Under the pieces are notes generated by a model that had not been told where the DNA came from, made no database searches, and saw only the letters and a list, made by a program, of their open reading frames with translations. The translations under genes were made by a program, and so were the position numbers. A DNA stretch of 64,000 nucleotides from Anaeramoeba ignava BMAN (lineage: Eukaryota; Protista; Anaeramoebae): NCBI GenBank assembly GCA_028826165.1, contig JAPDFW010000010.1:23076-87075 (forward strand). The letters run 5' to 3'. This document shows, piece after piece, positions 4,441 through 51,602 of the stretch. The number at the start of each line of letters is the position of its first letter. Within the stretch, counting starts at the first letter, position 1.

Positions 4441-6856
4441 TTAAAGCTCTTTTTTCTCATTTGTATTTGTATTTGTATTTGTATTTGTATTTGTTTCATT
4501 TTTAACTTTTTGAAGAGATTCAGGAGCAATTTCAAGAAGAGAACGAACATAATAAGGAATTATAGAAGGATGAAAATTTTGAGGACGAGGAACTTCTTTT
4601 GAAAATTTACAGTTTAAAAGTGAATTAACAAAAGATTTTGGAATTTGAGTTATTCCATGGAAAGCGCCAATTAAACCACAAACAATAGCAGCATTAGTAT
4701 CAGTATCACCGCCACCCAAGAGGGTTTCTTTCAAGGCTAATTCGAAACTTGTTCCCAATAGTAAATGTCTAAATGCATGAACAAATGCAATTTTAACAAA
4801 TCCTGCTAATGGATAGTATGGAATATCCTTATTCTCTTTTGCTAATCCAATCCATTCTTGTACTTCTTCACATGCGTTCTCTTTTATCCATTGTTCTGCT
4901 ATTGAAAATGCTTCTTTGTTTTCTCCTGGATGATTGATAAGATGAGCACATGCTATTACATATGCTGCAACTGCATCTGCACAACTTGGATTTGGGTGTG
5001 TTAATCTGGAATCAGTTCGTGCACATTCTGCAAGTGTTCTTTTGTTTTTCAAATTTAGTTTTTTTATAATTAAATTAATTCCAAAATTTAAATAAAAATT
5101 TAAATAAAAATTGATTTAAAAATTAATTTAAAAATTGATTTAAAAATTTAAATAAAATTGATTTAAAAATTCATTCCAAAATTGATTTAAAAATTGATTT
5201 AAAAATTGATTTAAAAATTCATTCCGAAATTGATTTAAAAATTGATTCCAAAATTTAAATAAAAATTGATTTAAAAATTGATTTAAAAATTGATTTAAAA
5301 ATTGATTTAAAAATTGATTCCAAAATTTAAATAAAAATTGAATAAAAATTGATTTAAAATTTGAATAAGAATTTAAATAAAAATTTGAATAAAATTTGAT
5401 TCCAAAATTGATTTAAAAATTCATTCCAAAATTTAAATAAAAATTAATTTAAAAATTCATTCCAAAATTGATTTAAAAATTCATTCCAAAATTGATTTAA
5501 AAATTGATTTAAAAATTGATTTAAAAATTCATTCCAAAATTTAATTAAAAATTGATTTAAAAATTGATTTAAAAATTCATTCCAAAATTGATTTAAAAAT
5601 TGATTTAAAAATTGAATTAAAAATTAATTCCAAAATTGATTTAAAAATTGATTTAAAAATTGATTTAAAAATTGATTAAAAATTCATTCCAAAATTTAAA
5701 TAAAAATTGATTTAAAAAATTGATTTAAAAATTCATTCCAAAATTAATTTCAAAATTGATTTAAAAATTGATTTAAAAATTGATTTAAAAATTTAAATAA
5801 AAATTGATTTAAAAATTCATTCCAAAATTGATTTAAAAATTGATTTAAAAATTGATTTAAAAATTGATTTAAAAATTCATTCCAAAATTGATTTAAAAAT
5901 TGATTTAAAAATTCATTCCAAAATTGATTTAAAAATTCATTTAAAAATTCATTCCAAAATTGATTTAAAATTTGAATAAAAATTTAAATAAAAATTGATT
6001 TAAAAATTCATTCCAAAATTGAATTAAAAATTGATTTAAAAATTGATTTAAAATTTAAATAAAAATTTGAATAAAATTTGAATAAAAATTGATTTAAAAT
6101 TTGATTTAAAGATTGATTTAAAAATTCATTCCAAAATTCATTCCAAAATTGATTTAAAAATTGAATAAAAATTGATTTAAAAATTGATTTAAAAATTGAT
6201 TTAAAAATTGATTTAAAAATTCATTCCAAAATTAATTTAAAAATTTGAATAAAATTTGAATAAAAATTTGAATAAAAATTTGAATAAAAATTTAATTACT
6301 TAACAGGAAGTTGATGACCCCAAATTGCTAAAGGAGTAGCTCTCATCAAACTTCCATTCGCTTTTGATTCAGAATTAAGCTTTTTTGATTGATTTATCAT
6401 TTTACTAGCAAGTTTAGGATCATCAGGATCAGCTTTCAAAATAGGAATAAGAGCTTTTTGAGTAGTATAACCCATATCAAACGGACCAGATTTGAGCCAT
6501 TGACCATACTGATAAGCGATTTGATTGATATTAAAAGTAGTCTTTGAATGATCAAGAGGAGAAATAAGACCTTTTGCTAATGAAAGTGCCATTTCAGTAT
6601 CATCAGTTAGTTGGCCACTTCCAACCCTCCAAACTCCTCCTCCAGGCATTTTTAACGCTCTTAATACTTCATCCTCATTCGGTTTTCTGCCTATCATCTC
6701 AAGATATGAACCTGATGAATCACCTATTGCTGCTCCAATAAAACATCCTAATGATTGATTGTATTTTTCCCAACTTATTTTTGTTAATTTTGATAATGAT
6801 TCCCATTCTCCTGTTTGTAAAGCTTTTAATAATTCTTTGCTTTCGTTTTGAAACAT
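4441..6856 (-). CDS. ADP-ribosylglycohydrolase (ARH/DraG family), 2 exons (6856-6300, 5038-4441), 384 aa
   Basis: Motifs GAAIGDSSG, GQLTDDTEMA, ANGSLMR, THPNP and GGDTDTNAAIVCGLIGA. A phase-2 GT-AG intron joins ...LPV-K-TLAECAR in frame. Confidence 0.92.
5039..6299 (-). repeat. 1.26-kb intron made of 12-bp satellite units (AAAATTGATTTA and AAAATTCATTCC on the + strand)
   Basis: Seen directly. Bounded by GT (6299) and AG (5039) on the minus strand. Confidence 0.85.
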
Positions 6857-7133
6857 TTCTTCTTCTTCTTCTTTTGTTATTGTTTTTGTTTTTGTTTTTT
6901 GGATAATTAGTAAAGAAAAGAGGAAAATTAAAAGAGTTTTTTTAATTAAAAATTTTGATTGTTTTTTTTTCGTTTTTTAAAAAGTAAAAAAAAAATGAAA
7001 AATGAAAATAATTTTTTGAGATTTTGAGTTTTGAATTTTGAGATTAATTTGAATTTTGAGATTAATTTGAATTTTGAGATTAATTTGAATTTTGAAAGAA
7101 AAAAAAAAAAGTGGAATTGAAAGAAAAAAAAAA

Positions 7134-9006
7134 TTAATTTGTGACGATAACTTTTGGACTAACTGCAACGTCAATGTATTCATAATAAGGAAGGAATTTG
7201 AAAACATAAATACCTTCTTGGTCAATAGTAGTTGTCAATTTACCAGTAGTATTTCCATCACAATTCAAGAATTTGAGATAAGAAGTGTTTGAGGTTTCAT
7301 TTGATTTGTAGAGTCCAATCCAATCTTGAGAATTGCCTTCTGTAACTTTCCATTCAACAGTAACTTCTTGACCCACTTGAATTTCAGTTGGAGTGACAGT
7401 CAAACTTTCTTCACCTTCAGGTCTTCTTGGGATCAAACAAGAATCAATGGTTTCGTTTGTGGAAGTTTTCAAATGGAATTTAAATCCATATGTGACTGGT
7501 TTTTCTCCTTCAAATGAGCATAATGCATAACAATGGGTTTCGATTCCTTCTTTTTGTTTAATAACTTTTAAGTTTTCTAATTCATATTCTGTTTTTCCAA
7601 CTGTTTTTGCTTTTTCTGCGATATCTTCTAATCCTTTTTTATCCCAATAATAGTAACTTGATGAAGCTGAAATTCTGACGCAAACATTCCATTTGTCTCT
7701 CCATACTTCCGAATAGATTCTTGAAAAACTTTTTGTATCATCACAATAAGTGAAGAAAGTCAATCCTATTTTAATAATTTATTTTAATATTTTATTATTT
7801 TATTAATATTTTAATATTTTAATATTTTATTATTTTATTATTTTATTAATATTTTAATATTTTATTATTTTATTATTTTATTATTTTAATATTTTAATAT
7901 TTTAATATTTTAATATTTTAATATTTTATTAATATTTTATTATTATTTTAATATTTTTATATTTTAATATTTTAATATTTTAATATTTTATTATTTTAAT
8001 ATTTTATTATATTAATATTTTATTATTTTAATATTTTAATATTTTAATATTTTGATATTATTTTATTATTTTTATATTTTTATATTGATTTTTATTTACC
8101 AGCTTGTGATTCTTTTCTCTCTTTTTCAGTAACTAAAGATAATTTTGGATTAACATGCTCAGTAACAACTCTATTCTTCTTTCCCAAAGTATCTTCAAAA
8201 ACAAGTTTAGTTCTAAAAGGTTGAGGAAGAGAAAAACTATAGAAATTTCTAAATTCATAACCTAAAGCTTCGCCTTGAAGTTCAACAACACAAGAAACAA
8301 CAACATCAACCGATTCCTTTTCTTTCAAATTGAAACTAGTTGTTCCATCAAGCCAATCATATCTTTCAAAACCTCTCCAATCTTGATATTTGACACCCAA
8401 AACAGTTCTCAAGGGAGCTTTCCATTCTTTTCCATCCCACCAAAACGCCTTGATTTCAGTAACTGAAGTTGGTTCGTTAATTGTGTTCACAACTGTCAAA
8501 TGAGAGATGAAATAATTATTGTATTTTCCACTTCTTGCATATTGATCACTTTGTACTTCCGATTTAAGATACTTAAGTCTTAATGGTCCTGGTCCTTGTG
8601 ATTCCCATACTTTCGGTTTAAGCGGTTCTCCTACCTCAAGTTTGCTTCCTTTGAAAAGTCTTTTCGGTAATTTTGGATCTGTTGGTTCAAGTTCTTGTTC
8701 TTCAATTGGAACTACTTTAACTGGTTGTGGTCCATCTTCAAATAATTCTTCTTCAATAATTTCAGCAACTTCTTCTTTTTGTTCTACTCCTTTTTTACCT
8801 GAATTATAATTTAAATTAAAATTTTTATTTATATTTTTATTTGGATTATTTTGTAAATTTAAAAAAAAGCAAAAAAAAAACTTTCAAAAAATTTTTTGCT
8901 TTTTTTTTTATTTAATATTATTTTTATTTTATTTACTTTCAAGAGCTGTTACTCTATCTTCTAATTTCTTAAGTCTTTCAATAATTTCATCGAGTTTTGC
9001 TTCCAT
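7134..9006 (-). CDS. Hypothetical protein with N-terminal coiled coil and C-terminal SKICH/Ig-like domain, 3 exons (9006-8937, 8798-8100, 7765-7134)
   Basis: GT-AG introns join the exons in frame (MEAKLDEIIERLKKLEDRVTALE-S-KKG; QA-G-LTFF). The C-terminal VTVEWKV...DWIGLYK...GIYVFKF pattern is SKICH-like. Confidence 0.65.
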
Positions 9007-46295: not shown

Positions 46296-49200
46296 TTAAT
46301 TTTGATCATTTGATTGTTCTTCTAAATCAACATTCTCTTCTGGTTTTTCTCGAATTGAAACTAAACCTGGAATTGCACTTTTCTTTTCTAAATCTTCTTG
46401 TTGTTGACGTTTTTTTTCTTCTTCAAATAATTCTTTATTATCTTGTTGAGAAAATTCTTTTGATTGAATTAAAAAGTCTCTTAAATGAATTTTAAATTTA
46501 GGTAAATCTTGTTTTAATTCAAACAAACCATCAACAAAAATTTCAATTTGAGTTTGATTTAAATTTGAAAATTGATTTGAAAAGAAATTAACAAGATAAA
46601 TTCTTAAATATTTTTCATTTTCAAGATTATTTTGAGCAGAATCAAAAAGTGGAACAGAAATTTGATTTAAAGAAACAAATTTGATCATTTTTTGTATAAT
46701 ATCAGCTTGTAAAGGAAATCCTGATTTGTGGAAAGTATCTGTCAAAACTTTGAAAATTTCCTCAATTATCAAAAGATAAAATGCTTGGAAAAAACCATTT
46801 GCAATATTAGGAACAGATAAAATATTATTAATCAAATCAATAAGTATTTGGAGTCCAATTTCAGAAATGTTTCTATCATTGTGCTTAACACCCCAAATCA
46901 CACTATCTACAAAAACTTGGAAGTTATTTGATGTGTATTGGAATAAATGATTGAAATTAGTTTTATTGATTGTTTGAATCAACTTGTAGAAATGGAACCG
47001 AAATTCAGGATAGTCTTCGAAATTCAGAGAAATCATTTGTATTGTTGATTCAAAAATTGACTCCATAATTTCTGGGATTTTGCTTGAAATCAATCCTTTC
47101 ACTTTTTCTACAATGGTTGTTAATACATACAACACTTCATGACATCTTGTTTCTGGAAGCGAGTTTTTATACTCTACCAACATAATTTCAAATAAGGATG
47201 GAATGATATCGCGAACAATCATTTGCGGATCTATGCTTTTGTAAATAAATGTTTGTATTAATCCAAGCACTTCTTTTTTCACTGAATTTAAATTTTTTAT
47301 TTTTTGTTTTTTGATTATTCGACTTCCATCGCTGTTTATAATTTCATTTATTAATTTGGAATAAATTTCATAAATATTCAGCATATTTGGGAATAAAAAC
47401 ATAAACTGTTTGCGAAATGGTGATCCAACGCTAAGTGCCACTCTTGAATTAATTTTCAAAATATAAATCAAATCTTTGCAAAAATCTGAATCAACCATTT
47501 GATGATGTTTTGTTGATATTATGTTGATTGAGCGTTGCCAGATAATATTGTATGAATCCATCAATCTATCAATTAACTTTTCCTTCTCTGTTTTTTTTGC
47601 TTGTGCAATCATAACTCCCAATGCCTGGAAAAATATTAGTCTTTGATGATTTTCAAGATCGGAAGTGATTAATGTAAGTTTGTTGATGATTTTGTTGATA
47701 AATGGACTTGTGTCTTTTCCTTGTGTTGAAACAAAATTCCATCTGCATTCATTGGATATTTTCAAAAAAGTATCACAAGAATTATGAACAATCATTAAAT
47801 TATTCACCATAAAAGTTTCATCTTCTTCAACACTTATATCATATACATATTCTTGTTGATCTAAATTTGGTTCTTCTATATCGATTATTAAATCATGGAA
47901 AACATCACTATAAAGTGCTTGTTTAAGTAATTTGATATCTTTTTCTATTTCTTCGTTGATTTGTTCTTTTAATTCCATTAATCTATTTTCGATGTTTTCT
48001 TTTTTTGATAATAATTGTGAATTTTTTGCTTTCAATAAATATTCTTTGATTTTCAATTTTAACTCAATAGGAACTTCGAAATTGAAAATGGAACTAGAAT
48101 TTAAAATTTCAATTTCAGATGAATTCAAAAAATTTTCTTTTTTACTCCATTTTTCTTCAATTAATTCAATCAATTTTTGTAATGATTTTCTTGTTGAATC
48201 TCCATTTATATCCACAAATTTACTTAATTCAATATCGAAAAATGTTGCTAATCTTGATGAAATATTTCCAATATAAGGAATAGTTTCAAATTTCTTAATT
48301 TCTTGTTGGTTATTTTCTAATGATAAAGTTTTATTAATTTTTTCAATAACAAATTTCATATTTTCTTCAATGAATTCCAGATTTAATAATTCAGAAAGAA
48401 TTTGTCTTGAATTTTCGTTTTGAAATATTTGAATGTAAACTAAATCTGTATTTTTTTCTTTTTTAGAACAAGTTGTTAAAATTTCAAATCTAGCAAGTAT
48501 TAATTGAATAATAGAAGATAAATTTTGTGAAGAAGAAAAAAGAATTAACTTTTCTTCTTTTTGAATCAAATTTTGATAAAAATATCCTGTTAATAAACCA
48601 GAAAGAAATGATTCATTTGCCAATAACAAAAATGATCTAAATTTTTTTTCTAATTCTAATTCTAATTCTAATTCTAATTCTAAATTATTTATAAACAATC
48701 TTAAATTATTAAAAAATAAAACAAGATTTGAATCCCAAAATTGTTTTTTGGAAATGAAAATATCTTCAAATATTTCCCAACAATATAAATTTAAAGAAGA
48801 ATTTGCTGAACAAAATTCCATTTGTTTTAGATTTGAATCAAATTTTCCAGATGAAATGAATATTCCAATAAGAAATCCAAATTTTGAATTTAAAAAGATT
48901 TCCTTGTTAAAATGAATTTTGTTTTTAGGATTTGTTTGATTTTGAGATGAAATAAAATTGTATATGTTAATTGAATTAATAACATCAGAAGAATCAACAA
49001 TAAATCGTTTTGAAATAGGAAGTCTATGTTTAAAAGATTGAAGATCGCTACCAAGAATTGGTATAATTTTATCATTTTTCTTGATTACAAAAGAATGGTT
49101 TTTTGTTGCAATAATAGTTCTATTTGTTTGTGTTTTAATTTTGATCAGATTATCATTTAAAGGATGGCGAGAAAAGCTTGTAATTTTTTTCCATTCAACT

Positions 49201-51602
49201 TTTTCATTTTGATTTACACTCATAATTTCAACATTATCATTTGGAAATAAAACAAATGATTTTCCATTTGATATCAAAGAATTTTCATTTGTTTCGTTTT
49301 TGATTTTTGCGTCTATAAAATCACCAATTTTAAATGGGATAATTTTGTTATTGCTGAATTTAAGAATAACAATTTCATCACGATGAATTGACATATCTTT
49401 AATCCCTGGATGAGGTTCATGCATAAATTCAAACAATTTATCTACAACAGTTTTGAGAAATTTCCAATGCATTCTCATAAACCTTGGATATTGACCAACA
49501 ACATACATAATATTACTTGCAATAACAGCTTTATTATCTTTGCCTGTTTTTTGTTCACAAAATCCAAGTAATTTCTTAAAAACAACAACCAAAAAAGTTT
49601 TTTCAATTTCCTCAGGCATTGAACCACTAATTGAACCAATTGCCCAACAAACTTTGTTTAATTTACTCCATGAGAAATTGGTTGCTATAATTTGTGCAAT
49701 TAATTGATCTAGCATAACATCTTGCATATCTTGGTAATTTAAATGGGTTAATAAAACCATTGTTTTCCTCATCAATTCATAAATTTCTATTGTATCATTA
49801 TCTCTTACATATTCTCGAGTTAATTCTCCATTTTCATCTTCCACAATCAAAACCTCCTCAGGTTTAACCATATTTTCAATCATAATATATCTAACTTTGG
49901 CAAGAACTTCTTCGTATTTCTGAACTCTTGGTGATCGTGTTTGTGAATTATTTGCAGAATATGTTTGATTTCCAATTCCAAGAACAGATGATCGTTGAGT
50001 AGAATTGTATATCATATTTTCATTGACTAAATCACTTGCAAATGAATTCCAAAAATCCAAACAAATTTTGAATATTTCGATATCGGATATTCTTGACATC
50101 GAAACAACTAATTCCAAAGCTATAAATATTTTTTCATCACCAACTTCATTGGAATTTTCCAGTGTTTTCAGATGATTTTTTAAAAAGGTGCTTAAAAAGA
50201 CAACTAAAGTGTTTATTAGTGCTCTATCGTTATCTGTTCCATTTTCATAAATGATTCCAAGATCTGTTGTTGGTGGAATAAATACCAAAATTGGTTCAAG
50301 TGATAAATTGAATAAACTGACAAATTTATGTGCATAATTAGGAATGAATTCCAATAAAGAAATTTCAATTAAGCATTGTAAAGCATTTTGAGTTGTGTCT
50401 GGATTTGAAACGAACTATTTAAATATAAATAAAATATTTAAAATATTTAAAATATTTTTATTTTTATTTTTATTTACTTTATTGCAAAGCAATTCTATAA
50501 TTTCAGTTTCATAAACATAACCAAGAGGAATCCATTTTAAAAATTTTTCAAAAGTTGCAAGAGTTGTCTAAATAAAATAAAATAAAATAAATTAATAAAT
50601 AAATTATTAAATAATAAATAAATTACATTATTAAGTGATGTTTTTTCACTATTAATTAAAATATATTCGCATAATTTATATATTGAAGAAAAATCATTAT
50701 AAAGTGAATCTTTTAAATTTTGAGTTTTTTCACGAGTTAATTGACCTTCATTAAAATCAAAAATTTCTTCACTTAAAAGTTTAAATATCATCATTATATT
50801 TTCACAAACAGTTTCACTTGTTTGACTTGAGTTTATCATTTCTTGAACAAAAGAACTCCAATTTTGAGGCCATTCTTTTTTAGCAATCTTAATAAAAATT
50901 CATTTATAAAATTAAAATTCATTTGTAAAATTAAAATTCATTTATAAAATTAAAATTCATTTATAAAATTAAAATTAATATATAAAATAAAAATTCATTT
51001 AAATTAAAATTAAAATTCATTTATAAAATTAAAATTAAAATTATTTATAAAATTAATATTCATTTAAATTAAAATTAAAATTCATTTAAATTAAAATTAA
51101 AATTCATTTAAATTAAAATTAATATTCATTTATAAAATTAAAATTATTTACTTCAATAAGTGCTTCATTAAATTTTGTTAATAAAACTTTATTTGAATTC
51201 ATTTTTTCATCATCAGAACTTAAATCAAAAATCATTTTTAATATAAATTCTTTAATTGCTTGTTGATGTTGATTTGGAATTATAAGCCAATTAAATTTAA
51301 TTGTTTTTTCAAGTATTTGAACTGCAAGAAATTTGGTATTATCATTATTACTATATTCAATTATAACATCTACTCTTTTCCAAGAATCAGGATGATCTCT
51401 AAATTTTGTAAGAATTTCTTGTGCAAATTTTCTCTATTTTATTTTATTAAAAAATATTTTATTTTATTAATTTATTTTTTTTATTTTTTTTATTAATTTT
51501 TTTTACTTCTTCATTTGTTCCATAATAAAGTGCATTTACAACTTCATCTAATAATTCAACATTAAATGATTCTTCTGAAAAATTTAATAATTGTTCTGCC
51601 AT
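46296..51602 (-). CDS. XPO1: Exportin-1 (CRM1), intein-containing precursor of 1615 aa (1078 aa after splicing); exons 51602-51507, 51433-51152, 50887-50627, 50567-50478, 50414-46296
   Basis: IBN_N region HPDSW; KKEWPQNW; KLLSEEIFDF; WIPLGY; MVKPEEVLIVEDENGE; CWAIGSISG; LLGFCEQKTGKDNKAVIASNIMYVVGQYPRF; FEDYPEFR; DTFHKSGF; HLRDFLIQSKEF. All four introns are phase 0, GT-AG. Confidence 0.97.
47781..49391 (-). mobile_element. Intein (537 aa) with degenerate LAGLIDADG homing endonuclease, inserted in XPO1
   Basis: Interrupts HEPHPGIKDM|SCDTFLKI. Block A starts at Ser (SIHRDEIVIL); block B ATKNHSF; block F YVYDISV; block G IVHN/S. Endonuclease remnants FGFLIGIFISSG, FLSGLLTGYFYQN and SSSQNLSSIIQLILARFEI. 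Confidence 0.95.

Follow-up and report, generated by a model that had tools for sequence, protein, structure and literature searches.

The window, a stretch of 64,000 nt of Anaeramoeba ignava DNA, carries a gene for the nuclear export receptor CRM1/exportin-1 whose coding sequence is interrupted by a long insert. This raises the questions of what the insert is, how it came to reside in such a gene, and whether a CRM1 of normal size could still be made from it.

An in-frame insert splits CRM1 within the NES-binding region

The host gene lies at 46296 to 51602 of the window on the minus strand, with its ATG at 51602 and its stop codon at 46296 to 46298, and encodes an intein-containing precursor of ~1,615 amino acids. 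A tblastn search of the window with the sister protein P0001, the public protein taken to represent the host in whole-gene comparisons, yielded matching pieces at 51602-51507, 51433-51149, 50875-50609, and 50567-46299; four small AT-rich introns were found in the 5′ part of the gene. The preliminary description had named the host CRM1, and this assignment is borne out by Pfam matches to CRM1_C (PF08767; E value, 4e-103) and to CRM1 repeats 1 to 3 (PF18777, PF18784, and PF18787), together with matches to exportin-1 chains in the PDB (E value, 7e-74). The Cys, Lys, Glu, and Phe residues of the NES groove (human positions 528, 568, 571, and 572) are conserved.

The insert occupies 47781 to 49391 on the minus strand, within the last large exon (46296-50354), where it adds 1,611 nt, or 537 open codons, in frame. 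Its translation runs from SIHRD to MIVHN and is flanked by ...LFEFMHEPHPGIKDM and SCDTFLKI..., and its outermost bases, TCA starting at 49391 and AAT closing at 47781, agree to the base with the boundaries given in the preliminary description. The latter gave no strand; the plus-strand translation of the same interval is riddled with stops, which rules that reading out. The part encoding the N-extein, introns included, spans 49392 to 51602 (minus strand) and ends in ...KLFEFMHEPHPGIKDM, the final Met of which corresponds to human M583, whereas the part encoding the C-extein (46296 to 47780, minus strand) begins with Ser+1 and carries CRM1_C before ending at the stop codon. Once the insert is removed, a conserved host is restored: in the alignment with CRM1 orthologs that had been suggested as a check, the joined ...GIKDM and SCDTF... 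line up with human ...GVQDM(583) and ACDTF. The resulting length of 1,078 amino acids is in agreement with the public model of a sister gene (1,609 amino acids, including a 531-amino-acid intein). The site had been placed just after the cargo groove; it actually follows M583 inside the 127-residue HEAT 11-12 fragment that binds the NES (2l1l_B).

The insert is a class 1 intein

Both splicing regions of the 537-residue element are complete. The N-terminal one (amino acids 1 to 125; 49017 to 49391, minus strand; model pLDDT, 80 to 92) contains Ser1 as block A and T96-K-N-H99 as block B; Ser1 does not vary across 11 aligned inteins, and T96 and H99 are likewise invariant in the alignment with relatives. 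The C-terminal one (amino acids 490 to 537; 47781 to 47924, minus strand; pLDDT, 77 to 88) comprises block F (YVYDISVE) and block G (...MIVHN), followed by Ser+1, and here V516, Y517, D518, H536, and N537 are invariant. Thus, the class 1 residues listed in the preliminary description are all present and invariant or nearly so across relatives. The scan with intein profiles, likewise proposed there, returned matches above the cut-offs, with 74.0 bits for PF14890 in Pfam (cut-off, 35.8) and with 40.4 and 22.7 bits for TIGR01445 and TIGR01443 in NCBIfam (cut-offs, 24.5 and 15.6, respectively). The top NCBIfam match was the intein part of archaeal RpoA'' (NF011491/PRK14898), covering intein residues 1 to 423 with an E value of 5e-52.

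The AlphaFold model contains a predicted Hint domain, with residues 1 to 140 and 490 to 537 at pLDDT 77 to 92, and Foldseek matched the model to mini-inteins and intein-endonucleases at a probability of 1.00, with PI-PkoII, TliVMA, and PI-PfuI on top. The fold shared by the model with PI-PkoII (2cw7), PI-PfuI (1dq3), the Tli and Pho VMA inteins (7qss and 7qst), and PI-SceI, a Hint domain with an inserted LAGLIDADG domain, was recognized at E values of 1e-14 to 1e-11 and at 9 to 13% identity. Profile scores, catalytic residues, and predicted fold thus confirm the insert as an intein.

The exportin-1 intein is real and already known. It is part of the published Anaeramoeba intein set, and NCBI names two A. 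ignava sister copies "intein-containing exportin-1 precursor," so that the novelty implied in the preliminary description for this host does not stand. These copies are KAJ5069587.1 (UniRef A0A9Q0LB23; P0001) on C93, which shares genome, host protein, and insertion site with the window copy, and P0018 on C72, which carries the same public name and site and an intein 34% identical by alignment to that of the window. Exportin is absent from the main text of the 2023 paper (Gallot-Lavallee et al., PNAS 120:e2306381120; PMC10710043). The present analysis adds the set of four paralogs, the decayed state of the endonuclease, the selection acting on the splicing blocks, the likely family of the donor, and the precise position of the site in the structure. 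CRM1 appears to be unique among intein hosts, being a HEAT-repeat transport receptor that has neither a nucleotide-binding site nor a prokaryotic counterpart.

All canonical CRM1 paralogs carry the intein, and selection preserves its splicing blocks

Four canonical CRM1 genes are present in the A. ignava genome (C12, C93, C13, and C72), and all of them harbor an intein at the identical site, with the common junctions PHPGIKDM↓S...VHN↓SCDTFLKI (arrows mark the splice points). The window copy is C12, a paralog distinct from its C93 sister: the two are 98% identical in the gene as well as in the intein over a duplicated stretch of only ~6.5 kb, and they are set apart by a 150-nt patch of divergence within the C-extein and by 6 amino acids missing from the C93 intein at a Leu/Glu microsatellite. 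A fifth, divergent CRM1-like gene on C129 is devoid of an intein; it matches CRM1_C with an E value of 2e-62 and is 24 to 29% identical to CRM1. Two other proteins were dismissed in the search for hosts and intein-free relatives. P0017, a 1,431-amino-acid EukProt exportin, is an animal-type CRM1 model that contains an internal duplication but no intein, and P0055, the sole other CRM1 with Ser+1, is only 36% identical when compared with the two P0001 extein halves placed together.

Between C13 and C72, omega was 0.12 for the N-terminal splicing region and 0.03 for the C-terminal one, indicating strong purifying selection on the splicing blocks. The exteins are likewise under purifying selection (0.24 to 0.34), and values for the middle of the intein range from about 0.3 to 0.9 (0.31 to 0.86 for the endonuclease domain), becoming near-neutral in deep comparisons.

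The homing endonuclease is degenerate

A degenerate LAGLIDADG domain was recognized at amino acids ~160 to 345 (48357 to 48914, minus strand) from its motifs, the structural model, and a match to Pfam LAGLIDADG_3 that, at 19.4 bits, falls below the gathering cut-off of 22.5. In the predicted structure, residues 165 to 336 form two alpha-beta-beta-alpha-beta-beta-alpha halves of the LAGLIDADG fold at moderate pLDDT, matching I-DmoI in Foldseek with a TM score of ~0.6 by target. The two motifs read GFLIGIFISSG and FLSGLLTGYFY, neither with a catalytic Asp or Glu. At the same columns the relative P0006 keeps ...LAEG and ...GYFDGDG, where the CRM1 intein has ...FISSG and ...GYFY-Q, and the catalytic acids of both motifs are missing from all four CRM1 copies. 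Judged from these residues, endonuclease activity has probably been lost from the CRM1 intein.

The endonuclease remnant contains a microsatellite of six TTCTAA units (48648 to 48683) whose coding-strand translation is (Leu-Glu)n. It is followed by a Lys/Glu-rich helical stretch (amino acids 346 to 489; 47925 to 48356, minus strand), which is modeled with low confidence (pLDDT, 27 to 52) and poorly conserved, the two lineages of CRM1 inteins being 23% identical there. Compared with the solved intein-endonucleases, the CRM1 intein thus differs in this extra stretch of ~140 amino acids as well as in the absent catalytic acids.

The nearest relatives reside in RNA polymerase and MCM

When 1.84 billion representative proteins were searched, RNA polymerase largest subunits accounted for 125 of the best 150 of 729 relatives, and CRM1 hosted only 2 of these best 150, both being A. 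ignava cluster representatives. Proteins of ~1,400 to 1,500 amino acids with an intein near residue 585 had been suspected as further CRM1 hosts; the six that were scanned all proved to be fragments of RNA polymerase Rpb1. The closest sequence family is that of the trigger-loop inteins of RNA polymerase largest subunits (archaeal RpoA'' and eukaryotic and viral RPB1-type), which have the same layout as the CRM1 intein (Ser1, TxxH, LAGLIDADG, and VHN). They differ in host and site, GEPGTQM↓...↓TLNTFH versus PHPGIKDM↓...↓SCDTFL, with Thr at +1 in place of the Ser of CRM1. Typical junctions among these relatives are TQ(M/L)↓...HN↓TLN(TF/SV), and many of them, for example P0006, retain intact LAGLIDADG acids, unlike the CRM1 intein.

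In a quick tree search over 178 columns, one clade with an SH-aLRT support of 98 united the four CRM1 inteins with two MCM inteins of A. ignava (C85 and C106), and monophyly of the four CRM1 inteins received a support of 16.7. The MCM inteins, inserted at ...TTGKGS↓...HN↓SGVGLTAAV, are the nearest clade-mates in that tree and come from the same genome, and their termini (SVHRDE... and ...FVHN↓S) resemble those of the CRM1 intein; however, their host is unrelated (a P-loop ATPase), and they are only 26 to 28% identical to the CRM1 intein.

This pattern of kinship upholds the proposal of ectopic origin made in the preliminary description: RNA polymerases host most of the nearest inteins, among the best 150 relatives A. 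ignava alone hosts them in CRM1, and the MCM inteins are next of kin. It supports ectopic movement, probably within the genome, and CRM1 would cleanly illustrate how an intein can depart from its ancestral sites in RNA polymerase (and MCM) and settle in an unrelated gene. Microhomology was considered as the cause of the jump, since the RNA polymerase and CRM1 sites are alike in protein sequence, M↓(S/T)x(D/N/K)TF, but their DNA shows no match above chance: with 24 nt of each flank joined side by side, 15 of 48 bases agreed, ranking 835 among 2,397 positions in the same gene. Given this absence of above-chance microhomology, the weak monophyly of the CRM1 inteins, and the quick 178-column tree, which intein was the donor and how it jumped can only be inferred.

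CRM1 may depend on protein splicing

We conclude with high confidence that nuclear CRM1 of A. ignava hosts a bona fide class 1 intein, one that has probably lost its endonuclease activity, probably arrived ectopically, and would be kept splicing by its host. The intein would be transcribed and translated in frame with CRM1. Ser1, aided by Thr96 and His99 of block B, would then attack the Met-Ser1 bond in an N-O acyl shift, and the ester so formed would be attacked by Ser+1; cyclization of Asn537, assisted by His536 and block F, would release the intein, and an O-N shift would leave a normal Met-Ser peptide bond in a CRM1 of ~1,078 amino acids. The site splits HEAT repeat 12 directly after the helix that contributes K568, E571, and F572 to the NES groove. 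Cargo binding by an unspliced precursor is therefore improbable, and for this reason host selection would preserve the splicing blocks. With its LAGLIDADG catalytic acids lost, the element would thus now be a fixed passenger that is not self-mobile. As to its route, the intein probably descends from the family at the trigger-loop site of RNA polymerase largest subunits, entered CRM1 by nonallelic (ectopic) movement, most likely inside the A. ignava genome, and may have spread to the four canonical paralogs by gene duplication, by conversion between paralogs, or by both. It is reasonable to infer that nuclear export depends on protein splicing and probably waits on it, a view tempered by the divergent, intein-free CRM1-like gene on C129.

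That gene would matter most if the intein were decayed and did not splice, leaving the four CRM1 genes to encode nonfunctional or altered precursors, or precursors that work with the insert looped out, while the C129 product, with its CRM1_C match, carried out export. The degenerate endonuclease and the almost neutral middle of the intein would fit such decay. We consider it improbable, since each of the four copies retains Ser1, the Thr and His of block B, block F, His-Asn, and Ser+1, evolution is slower in the splicing blocks than in the exteins, the exteins themselves remain under purifying selection with their NES-groove residues in place, and the C129 gene is so distant from CRM1; moreover, splicing has been demonstrated for three other Anaeramoeba inteins (PMC10710043). 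It is extremely improbable that the insert is an exceptionally long intron, or some other RNA element, that is taken out of the transcript and never translated. The host gene does have introns, but these are 41 to 273 nt long, have 2 to 5% G+C, and are filled with stops, whereas the insert ends in TCA...AAT and not in GT...AG, has 21.6% G+C, and stays open for 537 codons, for which the chance at that composition is ~6e-25. Its intein profile matches, its omega values below 1, and its retention in the coding sequence of public gene models also argue against an RNA-level event.

A less settled matter is whether CRM1 was invaded once, before its duplication, or twice or more by homing between paralogs, with an endonuclease that was active until recently. 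The latter is possible, though we think it doubtful. When C13 is compared with C72, identity is 87 to 96% over the intein and ~50 nt upstream and only 63 to 89% over the N-extein, with dS values of 0.24 for the intein and 0.74 for the N-extein, a pattern expected of conversion or homing; the low support for CRM1-intein monophyly and the interparalog intein transfers reported in the genus (PNAS 2023, PMC10710043) point the same way. However, ordinary gene conversion accounts for this mosaic without an endonuclease, whose catalytic acids none of the four copies possesses, and between the two CRM1 lineages the inteins (34% identity) are more diverged than the exteins (~49%), as anticipated for old vertical inheritance under relaxed constraint.

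The host-maintained intein could also do more than splice constitutively. Splicing that responds to conditions such as redox state, metal ions, or temperature would act as a switch on NES-dependent export and give a reason for keeping the intein in every canonical CRM1 copy; this is a long shot, but if true, the intein would be a post-translational switch in this anaerobe and not a mere passenger. The endonuclease-dead middle domain, under moderate constraint (omega of ~0.3 between C13 and C72), might have acquired a new role.

An exportin-1 intein and its decayed endonuclease

The minus strand of positions 47781-49391 was found to be a single open frame of 537 codons, exactly the interval that the preliminary description had assigned to an intein. 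Its translation (SIHRDEIVIL...NLMIVHN) lies in the large last exon of the gene for CRM1, the nuclear export receptor exportin-1 (46296-50354, minus strand), flanked by ...KLFEFMHEPHPGIKDM before and SCDTFLKISNECR... after. Plus-strand translation of the interval gives stops throughout; the coding strand is the minus one. At the insert's G+C content of 21.6% (20.6% in the window), the chance of so long an open frame is ~6e-25. Since the insert starts with TCA and ends with AAT, it lacks GT...AG ends; the introns of the gene (50568-51506, minus strand) are 41-273 nt long with 2-5% G+C. On indirect evidence, the insert would stay in the mRNA and be removed at the protein level. The longest of the introns consists of short AT-rich repeats.

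The intein call was borne out by profile matches above cut-off, the splicing residues and a predicted Hint domain. Pfam Intein_splicing (PF14890) matched at 74 bits (cut-off, 35.8), and NCBIfam intein_Nterm and intein_Cterm at 40.4 and 22.7 (cut-offs, 24.5 and 15.6). Ser1, block B T96-K-N-H99, block F YVYDISVE, His536-Asn537, and Ser+1 were all found, and none of them varies among the 11 related inteins that were aligned. The AlphaFold model (pTM 0.68) is confident for the Hint domain, made up of residues 1-140 and 490-537, moderately confident at residues 165-336, comprising two alpha-beta-beta-alpha-type halves, and poor at the helical stretch 355-468. Its top Foldseek matches in the PDB are the intein-endonucleases PI-PkoII, TliVMA, PI-PfuI, and PhoVMA (E 1e-14 to 1e-11), followed by mini-inteins, PI-SceI, and I-DmoI. 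The LAGLIDADG_3 profile stayed below cut-off (19.4 versus 22.5), and acidic residues are absent from both LAGLIDADG motifs in all four CRM1 copies: the motifs read ...FISSG and ...GYFY-Q here, whereas P0006, a related intein that keeps these residues, has ...LAEG and ...GYFDGDG. Inside the endonuclease remnant, a TTCTAA x6 microsatellite (48648-48683) codes for (Leu-Glu)n; its length varies between copies and is one source of the 6-aa difference from the copy on contig C93. We infer from these sequences that the homing endonuclease is dead. Exportin-1 of A. ignava thus contains a genuine class-1 intein that is well preserved and whose endonuclease has decayed.

The intein site in CRM1

The host, as described earlier, is CRM1: CRM1_C matched at E 4e-103 along with CRM1 repeats 1-3, and solved exportin-1 structures aligned at E 7e-74. 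For whole-gene comparisons, the public protein P0001 (the C93 copy) was employed in place of an intein-removed window gene; flanks or extein halves were set side by side in two local scripts, for comparison alone. The last residue of the N-extein (the host part before the intein) aligns with human M583, and the counterparts of human C528, K568, E571, and F572, residues that we take to belong to the NES groove, are conserved upstream. The insertion falls after residue 80 of 2l1l_B, a solved 127-residue NES-binding fragment, which by alignment places the intein within the HEAT 11-12 unit, in the turn that follows the helix bearing K568, E571, and F572, and not just after the cargo groove as previously proposed. 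It is a sound inference that an unspliced precursor would be unable to bind cargo. The +1 residue is Ser here versus Ala in 114 of the 115 other CRM1s matching the motif.

Duplication, conversion, and selection among the CRM1 copies

A six-frame search of the 42.8-Mb assembly (147 contigs) with the intein as query yielded four full-length copies, all in CRM1 genes: that of the window's contig (C12) and those on C93, C13, and C72, respectively 98%, 34%, and 38% identical to it (34% for C72 by alignment). The junctions PHPGIKDM|S...VHN|SCDTFLKI are identical in all four. Two haplotypes could be ruled out for C12 and C93, because their similar DNA spans just ~6.5 kb, which indicated a gene-sized duplication. 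Between these two copies, one 150-nt patch of the C-extein, the host part after the intein (~47414-47564, minus strand), is 81% identical while other 150-nt windows are 96-100% identical; a small conversion from a different source could account for it.

Between the two CRM1 lineages, exteins are ~49% and inteins 34% identical, with synonymous sites saturated, a pattern consistent with a single old insertion and later duplication, with faster evolution of the intein than of the host. For C13 versus C72, identity is 66% in the N-extein (dS 0.74), 87% in the intein (dS 0.24), and 88% in the C-extein. At the DNA level (L003/L016 versus L004/L017), the N-extein is 63-89% and the C-extein 78-99% identical, and identity rises to 87-96% ~50 nt before the intein and is kept through it. 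This mosaic suggests conversion between paralogs, with tracts centred on the intein. Omega for the same pair is 0.12 in the N-terminal and 0.03 in the C-terminal splicing region, 0.34 in the central part of the intein, and 0.24-0.34 in the exteins; the splicing regions are therefore constrained at least as much as the host. Such low values are the signature expected of an intein whose splicing an important protein needs.

A fifth, divergent CRM1-like gene lies at ~5395-7743 (plus strand) of locus L015 (G000:C129:45000-54500; CRM1_C E 2e-62) and is 24-29% identical to the other CRM1 genes. It is uninterrupted at the intein site and has no intein (...FQFMGKSHHELSQI-SCQAFSNI...). This gene keeps Ser at +1, where nearly all other CRM1s have Ala.

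Origin and prior annotation of the intein

Among NCBIfam profiles, archaeal RpoA'' (PRK14898) matched best, through its intein part, at E 5e-52 over intein residues 1-423. When 1.84 billion representatives were searched exhaustively with HMMER, 729 relatives were found; among the best 150, 125 carry RNA polymerase largest-subunit sequence, 23 are unclassified, and 2 are CRM1, both from A. ignava. The junctions of the relatives are mostly TQ(M/L)|...HN|TLN(TF or SV), presumably the RNA polymerase trigger-loop site, as read from the conserved motif. Related inteins occupy TQ(M/L)|TLN-type sites in A. ignava RNA polymerase genes, and more distant ones occur in its MCM and DNA polymerase epsilon genes. 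In a quick maximum-likelihood tree of 131 inteins (178 columns from the two splicing regions), the four CRM1 inteins and the two MCM inteins of A. ignava formed a group (SH-aLRT 98) placed within those of RNA polymerase; monophyly of the CRM1 inteins was present in the best tree with weak support. The dominance of RNA polymerase relatives among the best 150 of 729 and the closest grouping with MCM inteins support the earlier proposal that the intein moved ectopically, most likely inside the A. ignava genome. With flanks side by side, donor-type sites and the CRM1 site shared no more DNA microhomology than expected by chance. Ectopic intein movement has been described for the genus Anaeramoeba (PMC10710043).

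P0001 (KAJ5069587.1; UniRef A0A9Q0LB23) bears the NCBI name "intein-containing exportin-1 precursor [Anaeramoeba ignava]", as does P0018, the C72 copy; the depositors had therefore already recognised exportin-1 inteins in this genome, and the novelty implied at first does not stand. For A. ignava, 103 inteins, 18 novel host families, and a largest intein of 550 aa have been reported (PMC10710043); exportin or CRM1 is absent from the main text of that paper, and a full-text literature search for intein and exportin together returned engineering papers only. The exportin-1 intein is thus already known, being publicly annotated and part of a published phenomenon.

Other inteins in A. ignava RNA polymerase genes

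An RPB1 intein at ...QMTLN|SIDWKE... (L005, G000:C67:258110-261679, minus strand) is without the terminal His-Asn, its C-terminal junction being atypical (...ANGIGMMDTFHHAG); atypical C-termini have been noted for one intein cluster (PMC10710043). One RNA polymerase largest-subunit gene (L007/L008, G000:C1:475785-480797, minus strand) carries two inteins separated by just four residues (GEPSTQM|intein 1|TLNS|intein 2). Many public relatives have this tandem arrangement too, with the junction ...HN|TLNSV.
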